Assembly: GCF_000002075.1 (NCBI RefSeq)
Contig: NW_004797546.1
Location: forward strand, 618,939 to 682,900
Reading direction: 5' to 3'
Source of the DNA: Aplysia californica
Lineage: Eukaryota
DNA: 63,962 bases
Numbering within the stretch: position 1 is the first letter of the stretch; each line of letters starts with the position of its first letter. The notes below the pieces were generated by a model. That model was not told the DNA's origin. It searched no databases and worked only from the letters and a program-made list of their open reading frames with translations. Below, one piece after another: positions 2,881 to 34,608 of this stretch. The position numbers and the translations under genes were made by a program.

Positions 2881-5800
2881 TCGCATAACTTTTTCTACAA
2901 TTTCCTGTCCGTTTGGCGTAAGTATTGCAATGGTTTCTATTTCTCAGCCACACTCAGTGTTATATCATTTACTTTGTTTGTTACAACTCTCACACGGTGT
3001 TTAGACAATGAAATGAAATTTTGACTTTGTTTGTTTATTTGGGAATTTTGTTGTTTGTGACAATCTGAAAGGAATAGTTCGTGTGGTAAGTTAACGGGGG
3101 CAGTTACCAACGGACCAACGCCAACTGCTGATGAATGATTATGCCTATCCTATACTATCGGAGTCACTCCGATTAGTGATTATAGTCTAGATCTAGACTA
3201 GATCTAGTCTTTCAGAGATTTAATTCGAGTTAGGCAGGGGTATATGAGTATAGCTATGATCGTATTTAAGAAAGGAAAGGGTAATATTTATGGTCTTTGT
3301 TGATCTTAGTTGTCTTTTAAAAAATAGGCTACATTTATCCTTAAAACTTAAGCAATCAAACCCAAAATTTAAGCTCCCAAAATGATTGAAGTGAAGGCTG
3401 AAAGAGAATGAACTAACTCATCAATGACTCATACGATACAGATGAGTCCTAGACCCATCCAAAATGACACTAGTACCAATGATTCAGTCGAAACAGCTAT
3501 AATACTTTGTACAATATGAACATATGGCAATGAATTATTTCATTTACTCTTCAGCTTTTGACCTCGGAATTAATTCCTATATTTTGAAGGAATTTTTTCC
3601 ATATCTCGTGAAACAAGTAATGGAGGATACACGCTAAATGGCTAAAACTGTGCCCAAGGAAAGAGTTTATACACATGATTTATCTAACACTTCAAATCGC
3701 TAAGTCAAAATAAAATGTAAATGGATTCGTAGAGATTGCATTAGCAGCAGTGTAATTTGTGATGCTTCATGCACTCTGTACTTACCGGATGCTGGGACTA
3801 TCCACTCGAAGACTGGGCTTCCATCTCATTCACTCGTAGAGTTAAATAATGACTGTTGTGGAAAGATTTCTTGGTTGAAGCCCAAAGTTCATGGACAGTC
3901 TGCTTTAAAAGTTTGTTGAAATCCCAGCAGGGCATCTTGAAAGTTGAGCTGTGTTATATATGTTTTGCTGATCTTGGCCAAAAGCTTTTTTTGTTTAATC
4001 CACAACATGAAAGTTTTGAAATGCTCTCTAGAGTGAGAGAAACGTATTATTGCTTTCTCTCTGACTGAGAAAACGAAACACGTAATTGATGAAAGCCCTT
4101 GAACTGAAGCAGCAGTTGAAGACCATCATGTTATTTATGATGCTCAACAGACGTAAAACAGAAGAATATTATGCTACCCGTCAGACACGTTTTTTTACCT
4201 TTCTTAAAGGCACTATGAAAAAAAGGCTAATATGATGGAACACAAATATCCTGCTGTAGTAATTTGACCTCACGACCCCCCTTTTCCCTCTTCATATTCT
4301 GCTGACATAATTTTTTATGGAAGGGCTTTTCAAATTGATGGGTCATTTTAAAGACCACTGCTATTGTTGCTTGAGTGCTCTTACCCATTCCGTAACCAAT
4401 CTCTTGCCAAGTGCTCAAGCCCTCTACCATAGCCTTACGTAAGTGTATCATATTGACCTTGCCTTACCCAATATACTTTATTAGCAAATGAGAATTTATG
4501 TAGAATCACAACAACACTTTTGTTTGCTCCAATCACATCTTTAGTGTTTGTAGATCTAGGTATCATCAAGGGCCATGCAGGGACTGCAGTAACCTTCTTT
4601 TAGACACTCATTCTTAAAGGAGAGCAAACTTTCATGTTCCATTTTACAATGCAGTTAAGGGTTGCTCTCATCACTTTCATAAGGGAGCCGTGGTCCTTCG
4701 CTATTTTATTTTGAACTTGATGTCCTGATGTAAATTGAGATTTACGTATGAAGAGGTCAAGAGTTTTGTTCTCAGTTCCTTTAAACCCATTACTTTGACA
4801 GGGTAATAGATGCTCCACTTTTGAAATAACCTGTCTGTGTGTGGTATGGTGTAAACTACTGAGCAATAAAAATTCATTTAAAAAACCTTTCATTGAGGAA
4901 TTTCCCACAATGGGTACTGTATATATTCATGTCAATTGTTTAATGGAGTACCCTGAATACACATGACTCTGGATCCACCAGAACAGACAAAAAAAAACTG
5001 ATGTCTTTAGGGTCCTTTACAAGTAATGAAGTTAAAAATTGAGCGTATGCTTCAAGTGAAAATAGTGCTTGAAGACTTTTCTTTATTGATTTTCCTTTTC
5101 TAGTACTCACTTCAAATTTCTACAACTCCGTAAGTATTCCAGCCAACCGAATCTCGCATATATTCTAAGATGGGTTTCTTCAGCCGTTTCCTATTGTTTA
5201 ACGGTGATTTTTTTTTTTTTCTCCATTGTTTAACGGTGATGACATGGGATCAGCTGGGATCAATAAGGGAAATGGCTTTATGAAAAGAAAGTTCTGTTTA
5301 AGGTACCAAAGAATGAAAGTGGAGTCACTAATCTCCCTTTACTAGATTGGTTTTACAAATGATCTGGCTATATGACCCGGGAAACATATCTTAGAATAAA
5401 ATGACCTTCTGAACTTCACATTTTATTATTAAAAAATCTGCCCATCTTTCTTGTTCTGATTTTCACAAAGAGACCTGTCTTCATTTTACATCACTATTCT
5501 TTTTGCTATGGTGTTCATTAGAACTCATCACTTGCTGCATCGGGTGTTTGCTGTGGATTTCAGTTGAGATCTAGGGAAATTGTTATACACTGCTCCTACC
5601 TGTTACCTTATTAGTGAACAATTGAATAATCTGTTGTCTGAGCTGGAAGAAGAAGATGGGTCAGTTCTGGAAACAATTATTTTAGGTTGATTTGAAATCA
5701 GTTTTTCAGCGTCTATTGTGTAACGCTGAGGTGCTTTGCCGTCACACCCACAAGACCCAAGTTGGATTTCTGTGTTTGAAGAATTTGTATTGAGTATCTT

Positions 5801-27862: not shown

Positions 27863-28399
27863 TAAATGAGACACTTGTGAAGTCATGCTGGCAAGATGAA
27901 TTACCTCTCGCAATCCACAAAAGGAGATGTTGGCCAAAAAATACCATTATATTAGGGACAAATTTGTAGATTTTCTATTGATGCCATTAATCTTTAACTA
28001 TAACTTTTCTTTTATTATTTCATACTTATAAATTGTAAAAACTTCATCTATAAGCTTGATGTATTTATTTCCATAAAAAAGGCTTGAACCCGAGAAATAA
28101 CTCATTTTGTCAGCATGCTTTACAATTACTTTTCAAAGTATTATAACGCACATGATTTTATACACATTAACTATATTTCCAATAACATTTCGGAGCAGTA
28201 TTAACTAGAATGTATAGTCATTTGGCTACTTTTTAAGGAGTGGGAACGTACTAAAAATTGTCAAGAGTGCAGCTTGATTATCTGTAATAATTAAAGTGGT
28301 AAAACAATCTCTACTAGAACCTTTCTTGTTTCTTGTCTGACAGTGTAATATATTATCTTTTATGTTCAATCCTTTAAAGGTGTAATAACTATTGAATAA

Positions 28400-28649
28400 T
28401 GTAGCTGTATTATTAGTGTTATTCATCAGTTCATGCCCTATCATCATCATCATCACTCTGCTCCCCTCGGGGACTCATGCATGCAGATCTAGATTCATTT
28501 GTCAGTGCGATCACTCATCATTTCATTCCATTCTACATCACCGTCTTGTGTTTTCCATTTCATTTCAGTTGATGTCGTCATCACTTGTAACCCGGTTGAA
28601 TTATTAAAAGTTCATTGATGTTATCCGACAAGTGATGAGTCATTCTTTA
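28400..28649 (+). repeat. 5' LTR (250 bp, TG...TA)
   Basis: Matches 33482-33736 with 2 substitutions and one 5-bp indel. Inr-like TCAGTT at 28565-28570 and ATTAAA at 28603-28608. Confidence 0.95.
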
Positions 28650-28668
28650 TGACAACATCAAATCAACT
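28650..28668 (+). promoter_or_regulatory. Atypical primer-binding site complementary to the element's own R region (putative self-priming PBS)
   Basis: TGACAACATCAA lacks the TGG expected for tRNA CCA pairing and pairs 11/12 with TTGATGTCGTCA at 28569-28580. Confidence 0.7.
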
Positions 28669-28807
28669 TCGTTAGCCTTTCCGTTTATACCTGAATCCGC
28701 CATTCTCCTGCACGTATATCCGCCGTCCGTCGTTTCGCCACCGCCGAAATACTGAGTGCCGAGGTACGCTTGTCGCCGACTCCACAAACCATGCCTTACC
28801 CTCCACA

Positions 28808-31800
28808 ATGGTCATTGTCTCTTGCCCTGCGCCTGGCAGCATGTATACAACGCCGGACGAGGACCCTGCCGTGGTCTCTGCATTACTGAACATACATGCT
28901 TTCTCCCATCAAAATCAAACTGCAGCTTCCTCAAGAGGGCCGAAACTCGAGAGGCCAAGGATTGATATTGGCGTCAACCAAGAAACGTGGAATGCCTTTG
29001 GCCGGAGATGGGAAGCCTTCAGGAATGGATCTGCCATCAGCGACTCTTCCGCCCCAACCCAACTCTTCCAATGTGCCAGCGAAACTCTGGGTGACCTACT
29101 GCTCAAAGCAGACCCCGGTATCACCTCTCGCAGTCTCAACGAAGTCCTGGAGGCGATGCGGAAGCTCGCTGTCATTCCTACAGCCAAAGGAGTTCTACGA
29201 GCTGAGCTAATGCAGATGAAGCAAAGCCCGGACGAAAACTTCCGTACGTTTGCTGCAAGGGTGAGGGGCAAAGCGGAGACCTGTGCATTCACAGTCTTCA
29301 CTCAGTGCCAGTGTAGCAAGTCCGTCTATGCTGACTACACAGAGGACGCCTCCCGAGACGTCTTACTGGCAGGAATTGCCAACATTGATATTCATCGAGA
29401 AGCCCTCAGTGCAGATGGCATCCAGTCCAAGTCGGTGAATGATTTCATCGCCTTCGTTGAAAGCCGAGAGATGGCCCGCAATGCCACCCCACTGCCCACG
29501 TTCTCTGCAATGTCTAGCTTCAAGAAGAGCATGGCCCAGGCACCAGCAACAGATGAGCGGACACAGACCATCCCATGCCCTGACTGCGAACAGAAGTTCC
29601 GCCCCTACAAACAGAAGAGTGGCGTGTGGAACACGAAGCCCCACAAACTATGCCTAGACTACTGGCGTGGGAAGCGCCGCCGCCCTGCACAGCCCCGGGA
29701 GAAACCTACTGGATCGAACACTTTGGTCTCTATGGGTGATCAGATCTCCCAGGTGTCGGCCGTCACCCTGCAACACAAGATCTTCACCAAGGGCGAGTGG
29801 CGGCGGGCCCAGTTCTCAAAACACCCTACAGTACAGTTTGAACTTGGGATCCATCAGCGTAAACCCATCCAGACTTCCACAGTGGTAGGGCTAGCAGACA
29901 CCGGGGCCCAGTCCAACCTGTGGGGTCTGCAGGACTTCCAGAGAGCGGGCTTTGCTGTCAAGTCAAGGATCTTCACACTGTCCGCATGGATATCAGGGCC
30001 GCCAACAAAAACCCAATTAACATCATTGGTGCGTTCCCTGGGCACTTTTCAGGGCAATCCACATCTGGACAAAGAGTTACCTGCCAGTCAATGGTGTACG
30101 TCAGCGATTCGGTCTCAAGCTTCTTCCTGTCATATGACACTATGATAGACCTTGGGATCATTGATAACACTTCCCAACAATCGGAGGCTACGATAGCGAC
30201 AGTGCCATGGACTTCTGGGACAGCCCCATTTCCAGTGGTCAGAACCAGTACAGCAAAAAAGTCAGCCATGCTAGGTCCCTCAACGCTGGCTGCACAGATC
30301 AGCAGGTCACGGAAGGTTCACCTTCCTGCAGCTGCCCCCAGAGGTCATCCATTCCCGATCATCCCCCATAGCTCCCATTCGCTCCCACCGTGGACAACAA
30401 CGAGAAAATGCGGGAATGGTTATTGAAGATGTATGCAAACTCCACATTTAATACCTGCTCCCATCGTCCCCTTACCTGCATGACAGGTCCCCCCATTGAG
30501 ATCCATATAGATGATTCAGCCACCCCACGCACATGTAACACTGCAGCACCAGTCCCAATGCACTGGCAAAGGCGTGTGTATGAGGACCTCCTACGTGATG
30601 AGGTCCTGGGCGTCATTGAGAGGGTCCCCTACGGTGAACCAGTGACTTGGTGTCATGGCATGGTTGTTACCAGGAAACATGATGGGTCCCCGAGGCGTAC
30701 AGTGGACCTCTCTCCACTCAACAAATTCTGTAAACGGAAGACCTTTGCCGCTGAGGCCTTGTTCCTCCTAGCTCGACGTGTGCCAGGGAACACATGGAAG
30801 ACAGTTACAGATGCATGGAATGGGTACCACAGTGTTCCATTGACAGAATCTGACCGCCACTTGACCACCTTTATTACACCTTTAGGCCGGTGGCGGTATA
30901 CCCGTGCCCCTCAGGGCTACCTGTCGTCAGGTGACGGGTACAATTGCCGCTTTGACCAGATATTGGCTGATTTCGAGCGAAAGGAGAGGTGCGTTGACGA
31001 TACTATTCACTATGACGAAGATCTGGAGGAGCATTGGTGGAGGACCATCGACTTTCTGATACTGGTGGGCAGAGCAGGTATTGTTCTGAATCCAGACAAA
31101 TTTCAGTTTGCTCGACGAGATGTCGAATTTGCAGGGTTCCATGTCTCAGAACACACTATAAAGCCCCTCCCAAAATACTTGGAAGCCATTCAATCCTTCC
31201 CCACCCCAAAGAATACCACTGACATCCGTAGCTGGTTTGGCCTTGTGAACCAAGTGGCTAACTATGCTCAACTACGAGACGTCATAGCTCCCTTTCGACC
31301 CTTTCTGAGCCCAAAGTACAAGTTCTTCTGGACTCCTGTGTTGGACCAGGCCTTCAGTGATTCCAAGCAAGCCATCGTAGATGCAATCCGCCTGGGCGTC
31401 GAGATATTCGACACCTCCAAACCTACTTGCCTCCGCCCAGATTGGTCTTCACGAGAAATTGTCTATTTCCTCCTCCAGGAGCATTGTTCTTGCACCACTG
31501 GTATGCCAGACTGTTGCCAAGATGGCCGGAAGATCACACTGGCAGGAACCCGCTTCCTTAACGGCGCTGAACAGCGCTAACCACCCATTGAAGGCGAGGC
31601 GTTAGCGATTGCCTGGGGCCTAGAGCAGACACGGTACTTCACCCAAGGCTGCCCCAACCTCATCGTGATCACGGACCATAAGCCGCTCTCAAAGATCTTC
31701 AGAGATCGCACCCTTGATGAGATCTCAAACTCCCGCCTCTTCCGCCAGAAGCAGCGCACGCTGCCTTGGTATTTTCGCATCGCCCACTTACCGGGAAAAA

Positions 31801-33464
31801 CAAACTCTGCAGCAGACACCACTTCTTGTCATCCCTGCGCATATACAGAGGCATCACCCGAGGACTGCTCTGAATCCTTATTAATTGCATCCATATGTCA
31901 GAACGCAGAGGAGCTAACCTCCATCCCCTGGTCTCGGCTGACACAGGAGACAAAAGCGAACTCTGTCCTGTCCCAAGTGATGACAGCAATATCGGAGGGA
32001 TTTGTAGACGACAACCCATCAATCTCATCCTTGATGAGATACAAGGACTCCCTGTACATCCTAGATGGTGTCCGTGTGGTGGTGCCATCGTCCCTTCGAC
32101 CGTCGATCCTTGAGGGACTGCATTCAGCACATCAGGGCGTATCAGCAATGGAACTACGGGCCCAAGCCATCGTCTTCTGGCCGGGTATCACCAACGACAT
32201 CCAATCCACAAGGACAAAATGTCGTGAGTGCAATCGGAATGCTCCATCCCAGGCTCCACTGCCGACTGAACCAGCATTCCCGCCATGCACCCCTTTCGAA
32301 AAAATCTTCACTGACTTCTTCGAGTTCAGTGGCCACCACAACCTCATTGTTGGTGACCGTCTTTCCGGATGGTCAGAAATATTTTCTACACCCTCAGGAA
32401 GCCCTCACTCAGGGGCCCGAGGCCTGATAGCATGTCTCAGATCGTTCTTCACCTCCTTCGGCGTCCCTGAGGAGCTCTCCAGTGACAGGGGCCCTGAGTT
32501 CACAGCAAGCGCTACCGGTGAATTCCTTCAGCATTGGGGAGTGAGGCATCGCCTGTCCTCCGCGTACCATCCCCAATCTAATGGCTGTGCCGAGGTTGCT
32601 GTGAAGAGTGCCAAGAGGCTTCTCCGATGTAATGTGGGCCCAACAGGGACATTGAACAACGACCGCCAACTCCATGCCATGCTTCAGCTGCGCAATACTC
32701 CCAATCCCGACTGCAATGTGTCACCAGCCCAGATCATCTTCGGATGCCCCATCCGTGATGTCTTTTCCTTCACTAACAGATTGGAAAAGTTCTCTAATCC
32801 GTCCATCAATCCCCTATGGCGAGAGGCCTGGGCATTAAAAGAGGCTGCTCTCCGAACACGTTACACCAGGACGGCAGAGACATTGAATGAGCATGTTAAA
32901 GCTCTCCCACCCCTGTCCCCAGGTGACAGATGCTTCGAGCAAAACCAAACTGGGAATGCGCCTAAAAAATGGGACCGCACAGGGCTGGTGACGGAAGTGC
33001 TGGACCACAACCAGTACATTGTCAAGATTGATGGCTCTGGACGCGTCACAAGACGCAACAGACGCTTTCTCAGAGCCTTCAAACCGGCAACAACTGCAAC
33101 CGAACGAGCCCCTCCTAGGCCTCACCCACCATTCAACAGACGGCACCAGATCCCTCTCCATATATCCCACCCCCCCAGCCCCATCGCCACTCACGTTGCA
33201 TCCGATGTGACACAAGAGGGCACCCCATGCCCCCCTTCCGCACCCTTTCCTGAAACCGTTATTCCAGATCCCTCATCGTCTTCTTCTACCATGTCAGAAG
33301 CACCGACCACCCCTGTCGTGCCAGAAGTGACTACCCCCACCGGGCAAGAAGCAGCCCCTTCCAGAACCCACAGGGCCTTGCAACATCTCATGCCACACAA
33401 TAAGCCAGGACTCAAAGAGACTGTGACCCCTCAGCGGCGAAGAAAGCCTCTTGAGAGGCCATGA
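28808..33464 (+). pseudogene. Disrupted single gag-pol reading frame of the LTR element
   Basis: Gag from 28808, protease LADTGAQS, RT DAWNGYHS/APQG/CVDD, RNase H IEGEALA/TDHKPL, integrase HHCC and D-D-E (FTDFF, SSDRGPEF, NGCAE). Lesions: 5-bp duplication frameshift at 29957-29966, 1-bp frameshift near 30168, in-frame stops at 30369-30371 and 31578-31580. Confidence 0.93.
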
Positions 33465-33468
33465 ACTT

Positions 33469-33481
33469 GGGGGGGGGGGGA
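33469..33481 (+). promoter_or_regulatory. Polypurine tract (G12A)
   Basis: Immediately 5' of the 3' LTR. Confidence 0.9.
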
Positions 33482-33736
33482 TGTAGCTGTATTATTAGTG
33501 TTATTCATCAGTTCATGCCCTATCATCATCATCATCACTCTGCTCCCCTCGGGGACTCATGCATGCAGATCTAGATTCATTTGTCAGTGCGATCACTCAT
33601 CATTTCATTTCATTCTACATCACCGTCTTGTGTTTTCCATTTCATTTCAGTTGATGTCGTCATCACTTGTAACCCCGTTGAATTATTAAAAGTTCATTGA
33701 TGTTATTAAATCCGACAAGTGATGAGTCATTCTTTA
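33482..33736 (+). repeat. 3' LTR (255 bp)
   Basis: Direct repeat of 28400-28649, followed by the TSD AATAA. Confidence 0.95.
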
Positions 33737-34608
33737 AATAATATATGAAAGCTGTGGTAAGTTGTATGCTGATTAGTCCTTTAGCAACCCACGGTTTTGA
33801 TGTGAAAATAATAATGTGCACAGCTAAAATTATCTCAGTACAAAAACATCTTTTCTGACTTTTCATGGAATGATTTAGGCATTCCAATGATTTATACCTC
33901 AACTACAGATAATGCCATTACCTCCTAGCCTTTTATTATGTTTTGAAGTATACATATGTATAATCTTTGTAAAGAATGAATGAAACAAGTGGGGGGGTTT
34001 TCTCTCTCCTGAAAAAGTTTGTTTTTACAGCTTGTGAAATTTTAACAGCTGGTCAACGACATATATAAAGAACATTCAAAGATCATTTTTTGCTGTTGGC
34101 AAGTCTTGTACTTGTAGAGAAGTATCAGAGGTTGATATAACTGCTTTTTATGATCATTCCTTGTTCTTTATGAGTGATTGTTGATCATGCCTTGTTCTTT
34201 GTGAGTGATTGTGAAGAATGAGAATGGTTCAGTCAGCGAGGTGCAACAATAACAATTACAATCGCATGACCTAAAAAGATGTTCAATAGTCTTTTTCTTT
34301 TAAATTGTGCAAAAGAGGTGCTATCTATTTAACGATTTTTTATTTGCAAACATAATGAAACAACTTTGCAAGTGAACCAAAAATTAATAGAAAACGAGCG
34401 GATGATAGACCTCTAACTCAATTTATAAGGCAACTATGTCTGTGTAACTTCTAAAGTTGGACTATATAGCAAGTAGCGGAGATCGATAAAATAGCGATGA
34501 AAGATTTTTAAAATGAAAAGATATGGAGATCCATACAAAAATATACCTTATTTATCCATTGTGAAGAAGAAAACGTTTTGCTGCCTCAAGCTGTCGGTAA
34601 AAACTTAC

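Follow-up and report, generated by a model that had tools for sequence, protein, structure and literature searches.

The window analyzed here, a stretch of 63,962 nucleotides (nt) from Aplysia californica (contig NW_004797546.1, positions 618,939 to 682,900 of the forward strand), carries a retrotransposon bounded by long terminal repeats (LTRs), and the putative primer-binding site (PBS) of this element is complementary to a stretch within its own LTR. Our data demonstrate that this PBS-LTR pairing is kept by compensatory change across several phyla. The reading that best accounts for the pairing is a Tf1-like mechanism, in which the 5' end of the element's own RNA primes minus-strand DNA synthesis, and we consider it probable. 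The element itself is a degenerate Ty3/gypsy-type LTR retrotransposon of a large clade without a chromodomain. It shows the features of the Ty3/gypsy group (Metaviridae), namely, LTRs, a target-site duplication (TSD), a polypurine tract, the order protease, reverse transcriptase (RT), RNase H, and integrase, and gypsy-type RT_RNaseH and Integrase_H2C2 domains. The window copy is degenerate, with its coding region spread over three reading frames and a TAA in frame at 31578; relatives have one open reading frame (ORF) for a polyprotein of about 1,600 amino acids (aa).

An earlier reading of the window, made from its letters without database searches (here, the sequence-only reading), had pointed out that the letters following the 5' LTR lack the TGG of a tRNA-type PBS and had proposed that they pair with the start of R. 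The letters are as described, and the LTR end at 28649 is set, as had been claimed, by LTR-LTR identity together with the TSD (LTRs of 250 and 255 nt, two substitutions and one 5-nt insertion apart in their alignment, with AATAA on both sides). The predicted initiator TCAGTT does lie at 28565-28570, with A at 28567. The 12 letters at 28650-28661 and those at 28569-28580 are reverse complements of each other except at one position (11 of 12), a match reached by 3 of 2,000 shuffled LTRs, and A28580 pairs with the first base after the LTR, T28650.

The sole mismatch in the window, at A28654, had been attributed to CpG decay. When we searched the genome (927 Mb) for copies of the family, we obtained at least 40 LTR matches, solo LTRs included, and 11 further 5' LTR-PBS junctions, all 11 of which have G at this position, a result that fits such decay. 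The primer and PBS are complementary at 12/12 positions in seven of the 11 other copies. A group of four copies has one PBS change, with a G:U pair still possible; two further copies have one primer change each, again compatible with G:U pairing, and one of them (L011) additionally has an altered first PBS letter. By comparison with the same copies, a proposed extension of the pairing to 13/14 through a bulged, duplicated ATCAA had to be abandoned: the five letters following the 12-nt site are AGCAG in most family copies, so the duplicated ATCAA belongs to a few copies and not to the family, and a bulge is unnecessary in all other lineages. No weight was given to GGTTG, a DPE-like motif at +28, which is confined to the window's 5' LTR and absent from the other copies. 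Two LTR matches of the family (L013 and L014, G000:C40:1118627-1119295), on the same strand and 524 nt apart, could represent a tandem or an internally deleted arrangement.

Outside this family, the pairing is found with different letters. An RT search of the same genome yielded related families at 73-75%, 53%, 49%, and 46% identity, whose LTRs we delimited by comparing the 5' and 3' copies. When the letters after the LTR were matched with an internal LTR stretch, complementarity was 13/13 for the families on C68 and C261 and 10/10 for those on C490 and C66, and none of these post-LTR letters are shared with the window's family. Homologs with 55-66% identity over the RNase H-integrase region occur in notothenioid fish, in a sea anemone, and in many short public contigs. 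Matches among these were 10/10 (L071, L073, L080, L086, L087, and L074 from Trematomus bernacchii), 10/11 (L072), 11/11 (L075), and 13/13 (both units of L078). Shuffled LTRs reached the anchored match in 0 to 18 of 20,000 trials per lineage for the exact matches and in 3 of 2,000 for the one-mismatch cases.

These comparisons gave 15 independent LTR-PBS units: five Aplysia families (L002, L061, L065, L067, and L069), the Antarctic fish Trematomus (L074), and the public contigs L071, L072, L073, L075, L078 (two units), L080, L086, and L087. The sequence-only reading had suggested looking for covariation between R and the PBS among relatives. For each unit, we tabulated the ten 3'-most letters of the primer against the ten letters with which the PBS begins, and the neighboring pair as well (165 cells in all). 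Watson-Crick pairs occupy 164 of these cells, with two to five pair types at each of positions 3-10. The two units of L078, whose LTRs are 88% alike, differ at two adjacent primer letters, and the PBS has changed to match. Between L074 and L086, whose R-U5 regions can be aligned, seven of the ten primer positions differ, every one of them compensated in the PBS. The letters of the paired sites differ between units. The complementarity starts exactly at the LTR edge in 15/15 units, and the distance from the primer 3' end to the LTR end is 42-69 nt in all of them. No PBS among the 15 starts with TGG, and the PBSs have no core in common. An extra pair, formed by the T after the primer and the A that is the last LTR letter, is likewise invariant (15/15), and YCAT is conserved at the proposed cut, which would fall between its A and its T. 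The invariant T:A pair beyond the primer fits a cut made inside a duplex. The self-priming layout put forward by the sequence-only reading, with a PBS complementary to the predicted start of R and a primer whose 3' end lies at the LTR edge, is supported by compensatory change in 15 units.

In Tf1, bases 1 to 11 of the RNA pair with the PBS, RNase H cuts between bases 11 and 12, and the leader adopts a three-duplex "pretzel" (PMC10085805, PMC7175516, PMC4600332). An analogous pathway can be proposed here. Transcription would start at the A of the initiator-like CAG (A28567), and the first 10 to 14 letters of R, whose complementarity is observed, would fold back on the site directly 3' of the LTR. 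By analogy with Tf1, the element's RNase H would then cut directly 3' of the primer's final paired letter (between 28580 and 28581), with one U:A pair lying beyond the cut. The freed 3' end, positioned on the first post-LTR letter, would be extended through U5 and R and in this way define the LTR edge. Finally, plus-strand strong-stop DNA would copy the primer RNA, so that primer and PBS would be re-matched in every cycle. Such re-matching may explain why primer and PBS change jointly and fast.

Signals around the primer are consistent with this pathway. Most units have a YCAG-type motif 0-5 nt upstream of the paired stretch, and AATAAA, ATTAAA, or a similar sequence follows the primer at a distance of about 10-30 nt, again in most units; a poly(A)-like signal so shortly after the primer suggests that R is short and begins at the primer. 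The first letters of one contig, L086 (Logan, SRR19345898, 4,964 nt), are AG, exactly where the primer begins, and its last ones lie within U3. L086 is a candidate transcript contig: its ends are of the kind expected for one and not for a DNA contig, as DNA contigs in these data break at the LTR edges (L071 and L073). The transcript is predicted to start on the paired stretch or no more than a few letters away from it. We also folded 11 leaders, unconstrained, from the primer to six letters beyond the PBS. The minimum free energy (MFE) fold of the window leader is -28 kcal/mol (z -3.4), and the full primer:PBS duplex is present in the MFE structures of 9 of the 11 leaders (z -2 to -5.3). According to these models, the fold-back is thermodynamically plausible. 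The duplex between 28581-28588 and 28628-28635 described by the sequence-only reading is present as well, extending to 10 bp in the MFE structure.

Several observations weigh against this picture. A few lineages have the initiator-like motif farther out, 5-13 nt before the paired stretch, and their primer may therefore carry a 5' tail that is not paired. Contigs from four public runs over 28300-33800 (5,501 letters) are DNA-like, with repeat-like depth, and show no starts or ends, so that neither a transcription start site nor a cleavage end is visible in them. In the window's own family, five PBS letters are contested by a local hairpin, so that only 7-8 of the 12 primer:PBS pairs remain in the MFE structure; imposing the duplex requires 2.4-4.8 kcal/mol. 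Conservation across lineages does not extend to the accessory helices. The helix following the primer and a small U5-end hairpin are seen in many lineages, though not in every one. In the folded leaders, nothing corresponded to the Tf1 duplex that lies downstream of the PBS. As only the primer:PBS duplex is universal and the accessory helices vary, the leader is Tf1-like in its core only. Of the Tf1 architecture claimed by the sequence-only reading, the primer:PBS duplex therefore stands, but a fixed set of accessory duplexes is not supported.

The stem formed by LTR and PBS might instead serve another role, such as packaging, dimerization, or the control of gag translation, with some other RNA acting as the primer. 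The stem closes a multibranch leader fold, and the paired site abuts the gag start codon in several lineages, where it could affect translation. However, a purely structural stem would have no reason to start at the LTR edge in 15/15 units, there is no alternative PBS (no TGG and no shared core), and a primer must anneal exactly there to yield the observed LTR end. We therefore regard this explanation as unlikely. Marginally less likely still is priming in trans, in which the RNA annealing to the PBS comes from another copy, either as a short piece of its 5' end or as a small RNA derived from its LTR. This would require the identical complementarity, and every LTR contains the primer sequence, including the solo LTRs among the at least 40 LTR matches. 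Nevertheless, the leader folds are closed by a primer pairing with the PBS of its own molecule, and Tf1 RNA is described as first folding back and then being cut by RNase H (PMC10085805, PMC7175516). Priming in cis and in trans cannot be separated by sequence data; we infer that the primer acts in cis. That a host tRNA, tRNA half, or other cellular RNA primes and the LTR match is incidental is very improbable: most LTR retrotransposons do use a tRNA, and the same genome has 118 tRNA-Leu-type PBS sites, but the PBSs described here have no TGG start, differ by lineage, and each pair with their own LTR, grounds on which we rejected a tRNA or tRNA-half primer. No tRNA gene was found in the window, and no Rfam family scored above threshold at the PBS site.

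With respect to the clade that would use this self-priming mechanism, the absence of a chromodomain noted by the sequence-only reading holds. Pfam searches gave no Chromo match at an E value of ≤0.01 in the window or of ≤1 in four full-length relatives, and PF00385 is on none of the 240 homologs listed. The genome has 12 chromodomain matches, all host-gene-like, and the one in a long frame belongs to a CHD helicase gene. The Pfam gag, protease, and Tf2-type SH3 families had no match in the four full-length relatives either, no PDB matches were obtained for gag and protease, and neither the names of homologs nor the protein atlas supplied a clade name. In the matrix of pairwise RT comparisons, the self-priming lineages form two subgroups that are 41-58% identical to each other; identity is 66-90% within the first (about 60% for one full-length pair) and 54-67% within the second. 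All of them are only 24-33% identical to the Mag C-clade copies of the same genome and to a further group. A relationship to Mag, which the sequence-only reading had favored, is consequently unsupported, since the C-clade and the further group are 48-50% identical to one another. Compared with the RT of Ty3, the window RT scores 99 bits and a Mag C-clade RT 180 bits.

Two known clades were rejected as homes for the element. Steamer and its Mag C-clade relatives carry a tRNA-Leu PBS directly after an LTR ending in ACA (PMC8905726). They resemble the window element in that they have mollusc hosts, are about 5 kb long with short LTRs, encode gag-pol in a single ORF, and are suspected of having moved between phyla, but membership in this clade (Steamer, SURL) fails on the PBS as well as on the RT divergence given above. 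The 118 tRNA-Leu PBS sites of the genome lie 1.25-1.6 kb upstream of RT matches that are 27-31% identical to the window RT. Steamer-type elements are thus plentiful in this genome (e.g., C133:169906 and C213:1094559), many of them with long open frames. CsRn1 elements, which have been reported in Aplysia (PMC6238403 supplement, where families are tabulated without sequences), are a Ty3/gypsy clade without a chromodomain too, with a tRNA-Trp PBS, a TSD of 4 bp, and a Gag motif of the CHCC type as hallmarks (PMC2582038). All three are missing from the window element, which has a 5-bp TSD, no tRNA-type PBS, and a Gag motif of the form C-X2-C-X18-H-X3-C. Sites matching a tRNA-Trp-type pattern lie elsewhere in the genome.

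Published work names self-priming as a feature that the Tf1/sushi chromoviruses have in common (PMC10085805, PMC7175516, PMC4600332). Like Tf1 and Tf2 of S. pombe and other members of that group (Tj1, Tosmo, Maggy, Skippy, and sushi-ichi), the clade described here lacks a tRNA-type PBS, has about 10-13 nt after the 5' LTR complementary to what is probably the start of its own RNA, and has a primer whose 3' end abuts the LTR edge; helices around the duplex in the leader, a single ORF (in relatives), and a 5-bp TSD are further likenesses. It differs in having no chromodomain, a divergent RT with CVDD, LTRs that end in TA in several lineages and not always in CA, conservation of only the central duplex of the three-duplex leader, and hosts that are invertebrates, including cnidarians, and fish. 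Self-priming has also been predicted for the Tcn1 clade of fungi and non-seed plants and for the plant TAR lineage of Ty1/copia (PMC6317226), in both cases, as here, from complementarity between LTR and PBS. Unlike our clade, Tcn1 belongs with the chromoviruses as an ally of Tf1/sushi, TAR is of the copia type, and neither has been reported from animals. Surveys of mollusc LTR elements do not discuss self-priming (PMC6238403, PMC8905726). In the searchable papers we found no report of self-priming for such animal elements, and an earlier description in subscription papers or in Repbase is possible.

The clade was found in molluscs, teleost fish, and sea anemones and in many contigs of unspecified source. 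Over 761 aa of RT, RNase H, and integrase, the polyprotein of the Trematomus bernacchii element L074 is 87% identical to a Nematostella vectensis protein and 87%, 86%, and 80% identical to proteins from pipefish, eel, and Actinostola, respectively (comparison proteins P0206, P0207, P0221, and P0235). Such identity far exceeds what vertical descent would leave between a cnidarian and a teleost, and suggests that the element has been transferred horizontally among marine phyla. Taken as a whole, the scenario in which self-priming is independent of Tf1/sushi or was kept from a very deep ancestor, in a divergent, chromodomain-less Ty3/gypsy clade that is widespread in marine animals and moves between phyla while its primer and PBS drift through re-matching in each cycle, is offered tentatively, and we would put it at somewhat less than even.

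These results have implications beyond the element itself. In the literature, self-priming counts as the hallmark of a single group of chromoviruses, Tf1/sushi together with Tcn1, and of one plant copia lineage. If it operates in a chromodomain-less animal clade, the trait can no longer serve as a marker of Tf1/sushi chromoviruses, and its presence there bears on which state is older, tRNA priming or self-priming. The more than a dozen covarying primer/PBS pairs would constitute a natural set for studying how RNase H chooses its cut. In addition, annotation pipelines that seek only a tRNA-type PBS would mislabel a common marine clade as PBS-less.

The coordinates of the element and of its parts are collected in Table 1.

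Table 1. Parts of the retrotransposon and of its leader, in window coordinates
Feature	Position	Strand	Basis or remark
TSD AATAA, left copy	28395..28399	+	Matching 5 letters at 33737-33741
5' LTR, 250 nt, TG...TA, first letter T28400	28400..28649	+	LTR-LTR alignment
Initiator-like TCAGTT; predicted +1 at A28567	28565..28570	+	YCAG-type motif in most lineages
Candidate self-primer, 12 nt complementary to PBS	28569..28580	+	11/12 here; 12/12 in seven other copies
R-U5 helix, 5' arm	28579..28588	+	MFE fold
T directly after primer, can pair with A28649 (last LTR letter)	28581	+	T:A in 15/15 units
Proposed RNase H cut (predicted)	between 28580 and 28581	+	
Polyadenylation-signal-like ATTAAA; would give R of ~55-60 nt	28603..28608	+	Similar signals in most lineages
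R-U5 helix, 3' arm	28628..28637	+	MFE fold
Putative PBS, not tRNA-like (no TGG); A28654 deviates from all other copies	28650..28661	+	Sequence and copy comparison
Gag and start of protease; start codon at 28808; N terminus MV..CP.PG conserved	28808..30142	+	
Gag Cys/His motif C-X2-C-X18-H-X3-C	29576-29653	+	
Protease DTG	~29897-29905	+	
Remaining protease region, second reading frame (frame broken in window copy)	29863..30423	+	
RT, third frame; CVDD at 30990-31001	30372..31577	+	Pfam RVT_1
In-frame TAA	31578-31580	+	
RNase H, integrase (H2C2, DDE), Pro/Ser/Thr-rich tail, without chromodomain	31581..33461	+	Pfam Integrase_H2C2, rve
Polypurine tract, 12 G plus A	33469..33481	+	
3' LTR, 255 nt	33482..33736	+	LTR-LTR alignment
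TSD AATAA, right copy	33737..33741	+	

Further observations concern the LTR and the leader. The last ~16 LTR letters (window 28634-28649; L061, L071-L074, and L080) are alike across phyla, purine-rich and then GTCTTTCTTCA-like, and they often fold as a small hairpin just 5' of the PBS. This shared end may be an element for end recognition by integrase or a U5-IR-like element. The LTR of L080 (a JGI metagenome contig, positions 3549-3654) is only ~105 nt long, with ~45 nt left for U3. The poly(A)-like signal and the conserved LTR end are nevertheless present in it, as is the primer, and the PBS matches. Along the metagenome contig L078, pol is followed by an LTR and then by a second PBS and gag; this is either a tandem of two diverged elements with a common LTR or an assembly join. 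In several lineages (L073, L074, L075, and L086), the Gag start codon directly follows the PBS; the window's family has a 146-nt spacer. Finally, public contigs from three runs join across window positions 29993-30221 and 31101-31353, skipping 227 and 251 letters, respectively, which suggests that internally deleted copies of the family exist.
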